Of a stretch of 64,000 nt of DNA, positions 6,896 to 12,800 are shown piece after piece; the stretch's first letter is position 1, and each line of letters opens with the position of its first letter. The notes under the pieces were generated by a model. The model was not told the origin of the DNA. It saw only the letters and a program-made list of their open reading frames with translations, and made no database searches. This stretch comes from Macrostomum lignano (lineage: Eukaryota): positions 124,001-188,000 of the forward strand of contig NIVC01000769.1 in NCBI GenBank assembly GCA_002269645.1. The letters run 5' to 3'. The position numbers were made by a program, and so were the translations under genes.

Positions 6896-9800
6896 ATGGA
6901 TGCCGACGATTTGAACGAAAGCGAGATGTCAGTGCAAGACGAAACCACTCGTCGGAAGCGAAGAAGTCGCGGAGAAGGTCGAGAAAGTCGGTCCAAGCGT
7001 TCAAAAAGAGCTAAACAAGAAATCGAATTTAGCGACTATGAAGCCGCTAGCAGCGCTGCTCGAACTTCGTCTCGCCGGTCGACAGCCCGGCAGCGCAGTC
7101 GGCGTACAAAATCTGTTGAAGAAATCTGCGAAGAACTCGAAATTCAAGACGTTGAATTGTCTTATACGTCGGAGAATTTTGAAAACTGGACAATTCAAAA
7201 GCTATTTAATCAGTACGTGCAGCCGCTTCTAGAAGAGAGAAATCCGGAAGCTAGCAAAGAAAACATTCGCACTGTGCTGGACGCCAAATGGAAAGAATTC
7301 GCTTCGCTGAATCCCTATATTCCTAAGGATGATCTGACCGACTACACAGACGAGGAGATTGTTGACGACGAAGGCGAGGCGGCGGCCGAGCCCGCAGCTC
7401 CGGTCGCCCCTGCCGAGAGCAAGCGAGGCAGGAAGCGCAAAGGCCGGGGCGGAGGCGGCGGCGGCGGCGGGCGTCGATCCAGCGCGGCTGCTCCTGCCCC
7501 GACAGCCGACATCAGCGGGGGCCTGGATTCTCCTAGCACAGAGACGGCAGCGGCGGAGGCGGCGACTGCGGCTACCTCAGCTGGCGGCGGAAGCGGGTTG
7601 AAAATAAAAATTAGCAGGCAGAAAAAGTCTGCGGGCTCGACGTCTTCAGGGCAGGCGGCGGCAGCTTCCACCGCGGCTGCTGCTTCCGCGACGCCTTCCT
7701 CATCTACTAAGAAGAAACGCAGACGAGGAGGCGGAGGCAATAACACTTCTGACGAGGAATTCGAGCGGCAATTAGAGGAGGCGGAGCGAGCCCAAGAAGA
7801 GGAAAAGGAGCAAAGAAAATCGCGTAAAAGCGCCGGCGGAGCCGCCGCCAAACGTGCGACTGGTTCTGCTGACCACGTCAGAACAACGGAGAGATTCCCC
7901 GGCGAGGATGGCTACGAGACTGACCATCAGGTCAGGCAGTCAGTCAGTCAGTCAGTCAGTCAGTCAGTCAATCAGTCAGTCAGTCAGGCAGTCAGTCAGT
8001 CAGTCAGTCAGTCAGTCAGTCAGTCAGTCAGTATTACCCAACTCCCTCTACCAGGATTATTGCGACGTGTGCCAGGCAGGCGGTGAGATAATCCTTTGCG
8101 ACACCTGTCCGCGGGCTTTCCATCTGGTGTGCCTGGACCCGGAGCTAGAGGAGGCGCCCAGCGGCCGGTGGAGCTGCCCGCACTGCGAGAAAGAGGGTGT
8201 TCAGGTAGGGCAGGAGCCGGCGGCCGAGCCGGAGCCGAAGGATCACCACCAGGAGTTCTGCTCCGAGTGCCGCGACGACGGCGACCTGATCCTGTGCGAC
8301 TCCTGCCCGCAGGCCTTTCACCTGCACTGCCTGAACATGAAGGAGGTGAGTCTCTTATTGCTTTATCTAATGACGTAGACTGAGGCAGGTATAATACATT
8401 TAGTGTAACTAGCTAGGGCAGCAGCAGCTCTGCAACTCATGCGCTTAATGCGTTTATAGATTTTATTTATTTATAGCGAACAAATGCTTACCTACTACTC
8501 ACTTTTATTTGAAACATCATTCGCTTAAGCTTAGCGAAGGCGCATTACGACTCTTGAAAATATTGTAAAAACAAAAAATGGGCCACAGAGAAATTGGGCA
8601 AGATCTCCTAGCCGAGAAGCAATGCAACACAATACTTTTTTCTGAAAAATCCGAACATTTCTGGACTTTAATTCTTAGTAATATATAATATATGCTATAT
8701 ATATAGCGTTTTCCTTTGTTAAACATTCTGAGCTTATTTAATTTAAAAGTTTTCGATTTAAAATTGGCGCCAAAATGTATTATGCCACTTCTAGTTTAGT
8801 AGCCTCTTTTTGGCAGCAATTCGAAATCGAACGAATGCTTTTAGACTACAATTACTAGATGGGCCTAAATGTTAGAACAGTTTCTCTTACTTCCAGTTCA
8901 GTAGCAGGGAAAAATGCGTAAGCTATTTTATGAAAAGCAATGCAATTGGAGTTGCAGTTTGGATGTACATTAGCCAGCGCCATGAAATGTGCATGGCCCG
9001 GGCGGGGTAGAGATTTTCGCTCGGGGGGAGGGTTAAAGTAGGAGGGGTGGTTTGAATGCCCACTGAACAGGTCTTGTCCCAAATAATGCAATAAATTGGC
9101 CTCTATTAAACTTCTTTCTTCTGAACTGAAAGTACGAGTAGCATTCAAGCCAATGTGCCCAGTGGCCCATCTGGTTATATATATATATAGCACCCTGTGT
9201 CTCTGGCCAGGCACAGGATTTGAAAAAAGGCGATGATGGCCCACTTTTGCTTCAAAAGCAACCCCTGTACATGTGGCGCATCTCGGCGCAGTGAGTCTGT
9301 CTGGCCCGGCACAGCTGCGCAATCTGCTGGTCGTCCTTCTGGTCCATCAGCTCGTTGCAGTGCCGCTTCCAAATGCGCGCCTGTTCGCGCCAGCGAAGCG
9401 TTTCGTTGCGCCATTGTCGCGCCGATTCCTGACAGCGTAACGCTTCTTGGCGCCAACAGATTAGCGCTTCGCGAGTTTTCGCTAACTGGCTTTGGGCCAT
9501 GTTGGCCTGCTGGCGCCAGTGATAGGCGCTGCGCGTCATCTCGCACAGTTGGCGCTGCAGTTTCACTGCCTCTTGACGCCATTTTTCTCGACTCCGCTTC
9601 CACCGATGGATGCAATCCTTCCAGTTGGCGCTGTCCTGCTGCCAGTCAGCGTTGCAGCCGCCGCTGTACATTTCTGCTCGATGCCGCCGCTTCTTGCCAA
9701 TGCTGTTTTGTTGTTTTAATAAGTGCTTGGCTGACTTTTTTGGCTAAATTTGCAAGCTTTTACCTGCTTTGTGGCGACTCTTTTAAAACATTTGGTGCTT

Positions 9801-12800
9801 TGAGTAGACTTTTTACCATAGACAGCCGGTCAATTATTCTAAATATATTACCCCATATCTACAAGGATATGGTGAACTTATGGCTACTATTATTAGATTT
9901 ACCGGATCCAATCTTCCACCACTTTCTACCGGATCCAATCTCCCAGCACTCCATACCGGATCTAATCTCCCACCACTTCCTACCGGATCCAATCTCCCAG
10001 CACTCCCTACCGGATCCAATCTTCCACCACTTCCTACCGGATCCAATCTCCCAGCACTCCCTACCGGATCCAATCTTCCACCACGCCCTACCGGATCTAA
10101 TCTCCCACTGCTTTCTACCGGATCCAATCTTCCACCACTCCCTACCGGATCCAATCTCCCAGCACTCCCTACTGGATCTAATCTCCCACCACTCCCTACC
10201 GGATCCAATCTCCCAGCACTCCCTACCGGATCTAATCTCCCACCATTCCTACCGGATCTAATCTCCCACCATTCCTACCGGATCCAATCTCCCAGCATTC
10301 CTACCGTATCCAATCTCCCACCACGCCCTACCGGATCTAATCTCCCAGCATTCCTACCGGATCCAATCTCCCAGCACTCCCTACCGGATCCAATCTTCCA
10401 CCACGCCCTACCGGATCTAATCTCCCAGCATTCCTACCGGATCCAATCTCCCACCACGCCCTACCGGATCCAATCTCCCACCACGCCCTACCGGATCCAA
10501 TCTCCCAGCACTCCCTACCGGATCCAATCTTCCACCACGCCCTACCGGATCTAATCTCCCAGCATTCCTACCGGATCCAATCTCCCAGCACTCCCTACCG
10601 GATCCAATCTTCCACCACTCCCTACCGGATCTAATCTCCCACTGCTTTCTGCCGGATCCCAATCTAATCTCTCATTCTAACCTCCCAGATCCATCAATAA
10701 AATCTAATCTACCGGTTCAGCCGGCTACCCATCTACCAGATTACTTAGCCGAGTTAATAAAGCATGACCCTGCCATCAGCCAGCTGCTCACTGACCTCCA
10801 ACCATTCCACCACCGCCAGGCGCCTGAAGGAGACTGGCATTGTCCCCGCTGCTCGTGCGAGCCGCCCAAAGCCAAAGTGGAGAGCATACTCACCTGGCGC
10901 TGGGTGGAGCCGCCCTCGGTCAACAAGCTGGACGAACTGGACCATTCCCACCACGTCCAGGCCCATCTGAGCAAGCGGCCGCCTAAACGCGAATTCTTCG
11001 TCAAATTCAAAGGCCTGTCGCATTGGCACGACGAATGGATACCGGAGCTGCAGCTGGAAGTGCACCAGGCCAATTCCTGGCGCGCCTATTGGAAGAAGAA
11101 CGACATGGACGAGCCGCCGGTGCTAGACGACGGCTCGGTCTATCGCGGCCGCGAGAAAGACCAACCGGACGATCCGCACAATCTCGAGGATCGATTCTTT
11201 AAATGGGGCATCAGGCCCGAGTGGCTGCAGATTCAGCGGATTATTAATTATCGCAAGACTAAATCCGGCGATTGGTATCTGATTAAATGGCGCGATCTCA
11301 GCTATGAAGAGTGCACCTGGGAGAATCCGGAGGAGATTGAAATACCAAATTTTGAGCGAGCGATTGAAGAGTACTTTACTATGAAAAAGGTTTGTTAATG
11401 ATTGTTAGCGCTAATTAGCTGACGAGGCCATTTACCAAGTCACCCGTGTAAACAATTCCTCTTAACTAGTCTCTAATTAGATGGCGAGGCATTTAAAGCT
11501 TGCTGACTCCAGCCGTTTACCCAATATGCAAGCGTAAATTTACAGCTGTTTGTTAGTTTCCATGGGACTTTGAGAACTGCCGAAAATAGAGGCAATAGTA
11601 ATCCCACAGTCAGCTGGGAGACCAGAAGTTATTCCTATTTCGCTTGACCTCTGAGCGTGCAAATTTACACAGGGTGTACAGCGGCCCATATTTTACATTA
11701 AAAATCATTTAATGTTAAGCAGAGTTGGCCGCGGTTAGTACACAGCTCAGCCGCCCCGTTGAAAACGTTACTGTGACATCGCTAAAAAGTCATTGAAAAG
11801 AGCTCACTAGTGACTCTATCGAGTCTGGGGCGACCCAAGTGACTCTCTGGAATGCTTCTTGGCCTAGGTACTGTTTCATCGGGCGCGGTTCACCCTGCTG
11901 TGATAGGGTAGCATTTACAAGACAGTAAATTTCTTTTACAGCCACTCAAGCGTGATTCTATTTGTACGATATCTATTTAATAAACTACACAGGTGCTCAC
12001 AGGCGAGCTGGCCGCCTCGCTGGCCAATAAGAAGCCAAAGAAGTCCGGCGTCGGCCGGCCAAGCAGCAGCAGCGCCAAGGAGGAGGTCAGCCCGGACTTG
12101 GCCAAAAAACTGCCGCCGGAGAAGCCGATCACTAATTTGAAAACCAGCCAATGGGAGACTCAGCCGGCTTACCTGGATGAGACTGGCGGTCGGCTGCATC
12201 CCTACCAGCTGGAGGGAGTGAACTGGCTGCGCTACTCCTACGGCTGCGGCACCGACACCATCCTAGCTGACGAGATGGGCCTCGGCAAGACCATCCAGAC
12301 GATCGTATTTCTGTACTCGCTGTACAAAGAAGGCCACACCAAGGGCCCATTCCTAGTCAGTGTGCCTTTATCAACTGTCATCAATTGGGAGCGCGAGTTC
12401 GAATTCTGGGCACCGGATTTCTACGTGGTGACCTACGTCGGCACTAAGGACAGCAGGGGAGTGATCCGAGAGAACGAGATGTCCTACGATCAGGCCGCTA
12501 TCAGGGCCGGCCCGAAGGCGTCCAGGATTCGCTCGGGCAGCCAGGTGAAATTTCACGTACTGCTCACCTCGTACGAGTTGATTAGTATCGATCAGGCCAC
12601 GCTAAACTCCGTTGAATGGGCGGCACTGGTTGTTGACGAGGCGCACAGGCTGAAGAATAACCAATCCAAGTTTTTTCGAGTTCTCAGCTCCTACGATATC
12701 AAGTGAGCATATTAGGGTCTGCTGACCTGCTTAGCATGCATGTACTTGAAGCATTCGCACTTCCATCCCTGCTGACAAACTGCATTGTTTGCACTTTCTC

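Follow-up and report, generated by a model that had tools for sequence, protein, structure and literature searches.

A tryptophan-heptad protein encoded by an intronless gene nested in a Mi-2-type intron of Macrostomum lignano

Antisense to a Mi-2-type gene of the flatworm Macrostomum lignano, and inside one of its introns, lies an open reading frame (ORF) that is a real, functional, intronless protein-coding gene. Its 139-aa product carries Trp in one fixed slot of nearly all its heptads, which is very unusual in natural coiled coils. Our favoured interpretation, which we consider probable, is that this testis-region gene specifies a self-assembling coiled-coil rod with a Trp core that serves spermatogenesis or the sperm itself; the oligomer and the function are what we infer from the features described below. 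The window mentioned throughout is the whole 64-kb stretch of DNA that was analyzed, and coordinates refer to it. It matches contig NIVC01000769.1 of the M. lignano assembly GCA_002269645.1 at 100% identity over 10.4 kb, and thus comes from this flatworm and not from Drosophila.

The nested gene, its host intron and its upstream region

The coding sequence is complete and occupies positions 9252..9671 of the minus strand as a single exon of 139 codons plus the stop codon (9252-9254). Exactly this product is a called single-exon CDS on three homeologous contigs of assembly GCA_002269645.1, and in all three copies it is enclosed by a called host gene of 1866-1868 aa that runs on the other strand. 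The gene models of the GenBank assembly are transcript-based, and transcripts overlapping repeats were left out of them (PMC5730564). The host, on the plus strand, is a CHD3/4 (Mi-2-type) gene with the domains CHDNT, PHD, SNF2, Helicase_C, DUF1087 and CHDII_SANT. The location inside a Mi-2 intron, proposed in the first-pass annotation, is borne out by the exon reading frames and splice sites, which delimit a GT..CAG intron of 2474 nt (about 2.47 kb; 8346..10819, plus strand) that interrupts the second PHD finger and is the second one counted from the CHDNT exon. Directly 5' of the nested gene, and outside it, Tandem Repeats Finder detects a 27-bp minisatellite of 28.6 copies (9900..10665), where most of the differences among the three homeologous copies are found. 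The remaining members of the gene family occupy unrelated genomic contexts, with neighbour genes unrelated to one another, and the position in the Mi-2/CHD4 intron looks incidental.

The first-pass annotation had also proposed a longer product of 168 aa, which would start at an ATG at 9819-9817, lose a 61-nt intron (9763-9703) and carry the nuclear-import signal KKRRHR. The parts of this two-exon model are indeed present: the ATG, the CAG|GTAAAA donor and the AG acceptor of the GT..AG interval at 9703..9763 (minus strand), and a join that keeps the frame. In addition, the ATG lies within a DNA motif, TGTCTATGG (9816..9824, minus strand), that is present upstream of four of the five paralogues examined (A, B, C and E) and encodes M-V/A-K-S in three of those that bear it. 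However, the block shared by the upstream regions of four paralogues is only GTCTATGGYNAAA, about 13 nt of DNA with the ATG included, and the reading frames that follow, their lengths and any intron vary from one paralogue to another. In the alignment, the start Met of each of the six paralogues coincides with that of the ORF, and the CDS that was called has 139 aa, although the annotation pipeline would have chosen a longer ORF had a transcript offered one. The A-rich acceptor has no pyrimidine tract, splicing of the interval is unsupported, and the motif occurs outside the Trp family too. We regard the 168-aa protein as very unlikely; the interval, if spliced at all, is more likely a 5'-UTR intron. 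The argument for nuclear import fails because KKRRHR occurs only inside this unsupported extension.

The motif TGTCTATGG has a single copy in the window and is found at -153 for the window gene, -191 for paralogue B, -161 and -253 for C, and -158 (with one mismatch) for E. The same 9-mer recurs in other intergenic DNA of M. lignano, away from the Trp family. We take it as a probable element of the promoter or of the region near the transcription start, and TAATATATTTA (9840..9850, minus strand), about 20-30 nt upstream of it, may, from its sequence, act as a TATA-like element.

A Macrostomum family under purifying selection

Six paralogue groups were found in M. lignano, and the five further groups are 55-67% identical to the window gene. 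Using the 168-aa sequence as query, paralogues B and C were matched with E = 5e-49 and 3e-45 (about 65% identity), and a family profile search recovered a truncated copy of D (E = 2e-51) and F (E = 5e-47), whose identity to the window protein in the alignments is 55-60%. In all full-length paralogues eight Trp (W17, 24, 31, 52, 73, 87, 94 and 101) are invariant, and the stretch from residue 17 to 111 has no indels. The most conserved block comprises residues 16-35 (9567..9626, minus strand), which include C20 and H22 and are nearly invariant in the six paralogues; this conservation makes the block a candidate for a trigger or a partner-binding site.

The checks for relatives and for purifying selection suggested along with the original proposal both gave positive results. 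The pairwise dN/dS among three paralogues is 0.12-0.34, with dS saturated, and the M. lignano members Mlig013763, Mlig029657, Mlig026474 and Mlig033729 of the published orthogroup OG0001725_2, which covers 8-13 Macrostomum species (Wiberg et al. 2021, PMC8662610), are clearly homologous to the window gene. The codeml omega values reported for the five sub-orthogroups of OG0001725_2 are 0.065, 0.167, 0.208, 0.104 and 0.264 (PMC8662610 Table S1). A HMMER scan of 1.84 billion representative proteins matched only M. lignano members, the metagenome and viral contigs searched contained no relatives, and in Pfam there was no match above threshold; the family is restricted to the genus Macrostomum. 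The initial statement that no family could be recognised thus holds for Pfam, yet an existing, though undescribed, orthogroup includes the gene. In being lineage-restricted, expressed in the region of the male gonad and devoid of a Pfam domain, the family resembles flatworm-specific, testis-expressed orphan genes of M. lignano such as the Mlig-sperm1 family (PMC5816591), a likeness that implies no kinship in sequence; among the germline-enriched genes of M. lignano a high proportion is flatworm-specific (PMC5816591).

These data bear on the possibility that the ORF is non-functional, be it a chance ORF, a pseudogene, or a piece of a transposable element or satellite lodged in the intron. It could be argued that the intron is full of minisatellites, that three near-identical genomic copies alone give no selection signal, and that a hAT transposase gene lies 4.5 kb from one paralogue. 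Nevertheless, six paralogues preserve reading frame, length and Trp register, the dN/dS and omega values span 0.06-0.34, and orthologues exist in 8-13 species. An origin from a transposable element or satellite was considered and rejected, given that the paralogous loci share no flanks (they are alike only over 9278-9636, within the CDS, and the likeness ends with it), no transposable-element domains were found, and Tandem Repeats Finder detects no repeat in the ORF. A non-functional ORF, extremely unlikely in our judgement, is already contradicted by the data.

Regarding expression, all five sub-orthogroups of OG0001725_2 carry the label "Testis region" and belong to the bin of high expression in whole worms (PMC8662610). 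This label derives from positional RNA-seq, with many genes validated by in situ hybridisation, and it denotes a region of the body rather than a cell type. Of the five ids listed for M. lignano, four correspond to paralogues B, C, D and F. The fifth, Mlig014861.g2 (gene Mlig014861), is the only id missing from the protein database searched, which leaves out the window's own product; the window gene is therefore probably this one. By family membership and elimination of ids, the window gene itself is probably expressed in the testis region. Together with the calls on three contigs and the signs of purifying selection, transcription of the family in this region sustains the earlier proposal of a nested antisense coding gene.

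The tryptophan register and the predicted helix

The nine Trp at residues 10, 17, 24, 31, 52, 73, 87, 94 and 101 all equal 3 mod 7, as had been noticed in the first reading of the sequence. The chance that nine Trp fall in one mod-7 class is 7*(1/7)^9 = 1.7e-7, and 0 of 200,000 simulated cases matched. The other slots of the register are occupied by L38, M45, A59, T66, C80 and L108, which fits the earlier description of mostly L, M, A or C, and A, L, I, T or C follows four residues after the slot in most heptads, consistent with the small residue described there. Since Tandem Repeats Finder detects no DNA repeat within the ORF, the periodicity belongs to the protein level, as originally suggested, and does not reflect a minisatellite.

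A Fourier analysis of hydrophobicity over residues 17-114 gives a peak at exactly 3.50 residues (power 13.8, versus 0.13 at 3.6), and about 13.5-14 heptads follow one another unbroken and without stutter, the heptad periodicity expected of a coiled coil. In the resulting register position d is W/L/M/A, a is A/L, e is K/R and g is Q/E/S, and the repeat reads W-[R/K]-x-[E/Q]-A-x-x. AlphaFold2, run on the family alignment as a single chain, predicts residues 17-111 (9339..9623, minus strand) as one continuous alpha-helix (block pLDDT 90-97), in agreement with the early idea of a long helix with heptad periodicity and Trp in a core slot. A conserved K/R-D-D break at 111-113, seen in the conserved ELMDxKDDQQIA, separates it from a second predicted helix at residues 114-134 (9270..9332, minus strand), which includes C121 and C128 and is followed by a Cys-containing tail. 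The N-terminus is polar and has no signal peptide, and the 139 residues stand free, without any other domain. An AEM..Y.G.C-like motif that had been noted near both ends does exist in this copy (N-terminal MYSGGC, C-terminal MYRGC) but is weak or absent in the paralogues.

The product has a mass of 17 kDa, a pI of 9.6, a net charge of +11, nine Cys (6.5%) and 14% Arg; the full-length paralogues have pI values of 9.1-10.4, and basic residues at e, b and c border the Trp stripe. Such a basic, Arg-rich helix with Cys, from a family expressed in the testis region, could be taken for a binder of nucleic acids or of sperm chromatin that acts in spermatids like a protamine or a transition protein, with Trp stacking on bases and Cys cross-linking the condensed chromatin. 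We consider this unlikely: the strict period of 3.50, the 14 heptads and the lack of a single indel in six paralogues are a signature of helix-helix supercoiling, the Arg content is far under that of protamines, and the KKRRHR-type signal is found only in the unsupported extension. A coiled-coil rod and DNA binding are compatible, and the rod could also bind DNA.

The proposed rod and its closest analogues

In the coiled-coil rod that we favour, the product would be essentially one helix of 95 residues with Trp (or L/M) at d and Ala/Leu at a, and with Lys/Arg at e and Gln/Glu/Ser at g bordering the Trp/Ala seam. Most likely, several chains would wind in parallel into a rod whose core alternates layers of Trp with layers of Ala; three or more chains are likely because Trp is bulky. 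The Cys conserved near both ends (C6, C20, C105, C121, C128 and C138) may lock or polymerise the rods through disulfides or a metal, and the rod might be a structural or scaffolding component in spermatogenesis or in the sperm, where its strong positive charge would suit a polyanion or an acidic partner. Oligomerisation, even self-association, the number and orientation of the chains, Cys cross-linking and the cellular role are all put forward here as inferences from these features. Three points speak against this assembly: Trp has been considered too bulky for some coiled-coil cores (10.1101/2021.02.01.429152), a net charge of +11 per chain disfavours homo-oligomers unless there is a counter-ion or an acidic partner, and the combination of Ala at a with Trp at d also makes an antiparallel pairing of the "Alacoil" type sterically attractive.

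Three known systems are the closest analogues, and the flatworm protein belongs to none of them: the tetramerisation (WAT) helix of cholinesterases, the rod of the phage T7 tail fibre and the engineered Trp zippers. The first of these (AChE/BChE, PF08674, 1VZJ) is likewise an amphipathic helix in which Trp recurs at intervals of seven, with a hydrophobic residue four later and Cys nearby, and its helices, running in parallel, wind into a left-handed superhelix. The local sequence similarity involves residues 82-107 (9351..9428, minus strand), where the three Trp of WAT, spaced seven residues apart, line up with W87, W94 and W101. AChE_tetra (PF08674) is the best sub-threshold Pfam family in four of seven members (best E 0.0011), 1VZJ_A is the top PDB match of a paralogue-C fragment (E 0.041, with RQWKAE..RW....WK in common), and hhalign against WAT gives a probability of 71% over 23 columns. 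On the other hand, the window protein itself scores 12.7 bits (E 0.11) against a Pfam gathering threshold of 25 bits. WAT has only three Trp heptads versus 14 in the flatworm protein, and it forms a C-terminal extension on a secreted alpha/beta-hydrolase, whereas the flatworm protein is free-standing and strongly basic; the relationship is one of resemblance, not membership.

Nonetheless, WAT offers another way of arranging the helices, one in which they form no closed coiled coil by themselves and sheathe a central chain, extending over up to 13 heptads instead of three. Known WAT helices surround a central antiparallel polyproline II (PPII) helix (10.1101/431288), and the small Ala at position a would leave room in the centre. 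In contrast, WAT requires a proline-rich PRAD chain in its centre and works in the secretory pathway, and here there is neither a cholinesterase domain nor a signal peptide, while no proline-rich partner came to light and the genes next to the paralogues show no relation among themselves. Convergence with WAT is likely because the match spans only 23-26 residues of heptad repeat, and we judge a WAT-like sheath to be quite improbable. Also improbable is the specific version in which, as sperm develop, helices with Trp seams build a long hollow superhelix around a linear ligand such as a polyproline II chain; if true, the family would be a new filament-building module, independent of cholinesterases and limited to a single flatworm genus.

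Returning to the coiled-coil rod, the gp17 tail fibre of phage T7 (7BOZ, 7EY7) has natural heptads in which one core position is aromatic. Its repeat, [F/W]-[R/K]-[N/D]-[E/Q]-[A/S/T]-x-x, places a small residue four after the aromatic one, as in the flatworm protein, but the aromatic residue is mostly Phe and the six aromatic heptads are part of a 553-aa fibre; with E = 0.19 there is no evidence of homology. T7 gp17 is a trimer. The engineered Trp zipper of E. coli Lpp-56 (1T8Z), which is cited as a pentamer in 10.1101/2021.02.01.429152, and the designed coiled coils with aromatic cores also bury Trp in the core, which shows that a sufficiently wide bundle has room for Trp seams. The zipper is man-made and has Trp at both a and d, whereas the flatworm protein is natural, conserved across the genus, and has Trp at d only, with Ala at a.

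The nested gene and its tryptophan register

On the minus strand, positions 9252-9671 form an ORF that runs for 139 codons from an ATG to a stop, and the called CDS is a single 420-nt exon. The encoded protein (17 kDa, pI 9.6, net charge +11) contains 14% R, 13% Q, 6.5% W and 6.5% C. Its Trp residues are located at positions 10, 17, 24, 31, 52, 73, 87, 94 and 101, all of them (9/9) in a single mod-7 class; the probability of this placement by chance is p = 1.7e-7, and it was not obtained in any of 200,000 simulations. With W17 opening the first heptad, the residues in first position are, in order, W W W L M W A T W C W W W L, and those in fifth position are I R A L A A L L A A T A C K. 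Given that the spacing runs from Trp to the small residue at +4 and then +3 to the next Trp, the register places Trp at d and the small residue at a. In the five full-length paralogues known when the composition was computed, position d is W (57%) or L (16%), position a is A (43%) or L (20%), position e is R/K (69%), and position g is Q/E/S (70%). The hydrophobic periodicity of residues 17-114 shows its maximum at exactly 3.50 residues (power 13.8) and a power of 0.13 at the period that a straight helix would have (3.6). The Trp heptads had thus been accurately described in the first-pass annotation, which also proposed that the periodicity is kept at the protein level and not by minisatellite DNA; this was borne out with Tandem Repeats Finder, which detected no DNA repeat inside the ORF. 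The seam with Trp at d and Ala at a is genuine, conserved at the protein level and unusual among natural coiled coils.

The plus strand of this region encodes a CHD3/4 (Mi-2-type) protein with CHDNT, two PHD fingers, SNF2, Helicase_C, DUF1087 and CHDII_SANT domains. Its exons were mapped by their splice sites and reading frames; the CHDNT exon, used as query in a protein search for the host protein, matched only a tapeworm CHD fragment. The intron that contains the nested gene extends on the plus strand from 8346 to 10819 (GT after ...CLNMKE to CAG), it splits the second PHD finger, and it is the second host intron counting from the CHDNT exon; the antisense location that had been proposed for the gene is therefore correct. 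Three contigs of GCA_002269645.1 carry a called gene with exactly this 139-aa product, and the nested layout is identical in the three homeologous copies (three of three). Over 10.4 kb the window shows 100% identity to M. lignano contig NIVC01000769.1; a Drosophila origin, as the name Mi-2 might suggest, was rejected on this ground. For genome annotation, the nested ORF of the Mi-2/CHD4 intron counts as a real gene; the nesting itself appears to be incidental. An Rfam scan revealed no RNA family at the locus. A tRNA gene (RF00005, 61.9 bits) at 6577-6648 (+) precedes the first CHD coding exon recognised in the window by approximately 150-250 nt.

A longer, 168-aa two-exon version of the protein had been suggested, starting at an ATG at 9819 and joined across an intron with its donor at 9763 and its acceptor at 9703. 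These three signals are present in the sequence; nonetheless, the model is not supported, given that the CDS is called as a single exon, every paralogue begins at a Met aligned with the ORF Met, and the upstream regions of four paralogues show neither an intron nor a conserved exon-1 peptide beyond four codons. The KKRRHR motif, considered as a nuclear signal, is confined to this extension and falls with it. The alignment of these upstream regions includes only one conserved block, GTCTATGGYNAAA, which is preceded by an AT-rich, TATA-like stretch and is located at -153 (A, the window copy), -191 (B), -161 (C) and -158 (E) relative to the start codon. The ATG at 9819 lies inside this block, which we read as a DNA element of a promoter or close to a start site rather than a start codon. 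The similarity noted between the N- and C-terminal ends does exist in the window protein (MYSGGC and MYRGC) but is specific to this paralogue.

The 9-mer TGTCTATGG is found approximately 150-190 nt upstream of four of the paralogues examined, and also at unrelated intergenic sites of M. lignano. It occurs at 9816-9824 (-) in the window and, in other loci of this species, at 9810 in L001, at 1856 in L002, at 9748, 9840, 14027, 15958, 16422 and 16702 in L004, and at 4988 and 5664 in L012, usually with a T-rich stretch before it and Y-N-AAA after it. The 9-mer may serve M. lignano promoters or start sites in general, or may derive from a dispersed repeat. In L012, upstream of paralogue D, approximately 45 nt around the motif (..ATCAAGCTATTGAAGACTTGTTTTT.ATTGTCTATGGCCCGAA..) form an inverted pair about 680 bp apart, at 4958-5035 (+) and 5590-5694 (-), which suggests a small MITE-like element bounded by terminal inverted repeats.

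A Macrostomum family expressed in the testis region

Protein searches identified five other paralogue groups, all from M. lignano and every one labelled "hypothetical protein": B (P0001, Mlig013763, 136 aa), C (P0002, Mlig029657, 143 aa), D (P0007, Mlig026474/005078, 150 aa), E (P0008, Mlig023814, 149 aa) and F (P0011, Mlig033729, 156 aa), where the P numbers are our protein handles. These proteins are 55-67% identical to the window protein, their heptad region shows zero indels, and W17, W24, W31, W52, W73, W87, W94 and W101 are invariant. The strongest conservation is observed in N16-A35, followed by W94-A118 (WRExARxWKxxCxELMDxKDDxxIA). A HMMER scan that covered all 1.84 billion representative proteins gave no credible relative beyond M. 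lignano, and scans of metagenome and viral contigs gave none. No conserved neighbouring partner gene was observed; B and D are flanked by unrelated small proteins. The DNA similarity among the paralogous loci is restricted to the CDS and their genomic contexts differ, which argues against a mobile element, a possibility that had been raised for the region.

Purifying selection is evident from the pairwise dN/dS among A, B and C (0.12-0.34, with dS saturated). The three homeologous copies are identical over approximately 1150 nt around the gene and are therefore uninformative for this purpose. The family is also represented in published data: in Table S1 of Wiberg et al. 2021, orthogroup OG0001725_2 includes five sub-orthogroups with one M. 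lignano gene each (PMC8662610), with codeml omega values of 0.065 for Mlig013763.g1 (13 Macrostomum species), 0.167 for Mlig029657.g1 (12 species), 0.208 for Mlig026474.g1 (10 species), 0.104 for Mlig014861.g2 (10 species) and 0.264 for Mlig033729.g1 (8 species). All five members are assigned to "Testis region" and to the high whole-worm expression bin (PMC8662610), a label that derives from positional RNA-seq validated largely by in situ hybridisation. Paralogues B, C, D and F account for four of the five M. lignano ids. The remaining one, Mlig014861.g2, is the sole listed id without an entry in the protein database searched, and this database omits the product of the window gene; therefore, the window gene is probably Mlig014861.g2. 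The first-pass annotation would have been refuted by a missing transcript, a lack of purifying selection or a known TE; on all three points the outcome favours a real gene, with firm evidence for the family and indirect evidence of expression for the window copy. The GenBank annotation of GCA_002269645.1 was built on an RNA-seq-based transcriptome from which repeat-overlapping transcripts were left out (PMC5730564). In the accessible portions of the supplements of PMC5816591, PMC7336406, PMC12896417 and PMC5730564 no family gene id was matched; the ids were found only in PMC8662610. We conclude that the gene is real, already annotated and uncharacterised, and that its family is restricted to Macrostomum, with expression in the testis region. 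Lineage-restricted testis genes may thus be structurally distinctive, and not merely disordered "orphans".

Predicted structure and likeness to known coiled coils

AlphaFold2, run on the family alignment, predicted a disordered N-terminus (residues 1-12), a single helix at residues 17-111 (block pLDDT 90-97), a helix break at the conserved K-D-D, and a second helix at residues 114-134. A Foldseek search of the PDB with the single-helix model had no match below E = 6, which is unsurprising for an isolated helix. A membrane-binding amphipathic helix was rejected as the main model, because helices that bind flat surfaces have periods of approximately 3.6-3.67 residues and the power at 3.6 is nil here. 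From the 3.50-residue seam, maintained through 14 heptads in six paralogues, we infer the signature of supercoiled helix-helix packing.

The chains would run in parallel, an arrangement in which K/R at e and Q/E/S at g would avoid the e-e' clash of antiparallel pairing. To our knowledge, multi-Trp cores are found mainly in engineered proteins and in the three-heptad WAT helix, the cholinesterase tetramerisation helix. Natural coiled-coil cores contain less than 10% aromatic residues, Trp being mostly avoided because of its bulk, and the bundles formed by engineered Trp cores are wide (10.1101/2021.02.01.429152); for these reasons three or more strands would be favoured, with Trp layers alternating with Ala layers. 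The conserved Cys residues close to both ends could lock the rods or join them in series and, given the strong positive charge of the protein, a polyanion or acidic partner is probably involved. The Cys ends together with the testis-region expression suggest that the protein has a structural or scaffolding role in spermatids or sperm.

As the first-pass annotation anticipated, no Pfam family matches at threshold. The best sub-threshold match, in four of the seven members, is the WAT helix; window residues 82-107 align with its three Trp, and a fragment of paralogue C matches the WAT structure 1VZJ_A (E 0.041). With hhalign the probability is 71% over 23 columns. In WAT assemblies, parallel helices enclose a polyproline II chain (10.1101/431288). 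By analogy, the family could extend this principle into a hollow Trp-seam superhelix that sheathes a proline-rich chain or linear ligand in sperm, which we regard as improbable. Membership in the WAT family fails on score threshold, domain context and secretion, so that the WAT helix is a useful mechanistic analogue only. A PDB profile search also matched the rod of the T7 tail-fibre protein gp17 (E 0.19), whose heptads read [F/W]-[R/K]-[N/D]-E-A-x-x, compared with W-[R/K]-x-[E/Q]-A-x-x in this family; this likeness is convergence, not homology.

A natural, conserved protein with eight invariant Trp at d and Ala at a across 14 heptads offers a test of core packing and of how an oligomer state is specified. 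It is small and easily expressed, and its structure and its role in the male germline are open to direct testing; for M. lignano there are established methods of RNAi, in situ hybridisation and transgenesis.

Repeats in the window

A 27-bp minisatellite (9900-10665; 28.6 copies, 86% matches) is located directly 5' of the nested gene. It contains nearly all the differences between the homeologous copies in the aligned region of approximately 1.4 kb around the gene, and generates long spurious ORFs on both strands. The plus-strand ORFs 9233-10261 and 9880-10554 were rejected as genes, being read-through of the antisense CDS and this minisatellite. Several host introns are nearly filled by minisatellites with periods of 22-47 bp (12857-13939, 16664-17031, 17689-19033 and 23865-24569), and the ORFs of 400-600 codons over them are repeat products, not genes. 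Two of these arrays, 12857-13939 and 17689-19033, have a C-rich plus strand, and the 2-kb GC skew is approximately -0.50 at 12001-14000 and -0.41 at 18001-20000. The short first host intron carries an (AGTC)n microsatellite (approximately 7924-8030); the same repeat occurs near paralogue D (locus L011, 3560-4264), where it is read as SVSQSVSQ....

The minus-strand ORF 35692-36681 shows a Mito_carr (mitochondrial-carrier) match at its start and is probably one exon plus repeat read-through, because the remainder overlaps a 21-bp tandem array (35718-36241). Two 195-bp tandem arrays, at 53859-54767 (4.7 copies) and 56242-57345 (5.7 copies), with 97-98% matches, form an inverted satellite pair approximately 1.5 kb apart, given that their consensus units are mutually reverse-complementary. 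A 23-bp satellite family (AAACAT[T/A]AAAGAGCCACCATGTC) occupies 42036-44532 (108 copies) and 59328-60181 (37 copies), 15 kb apart.
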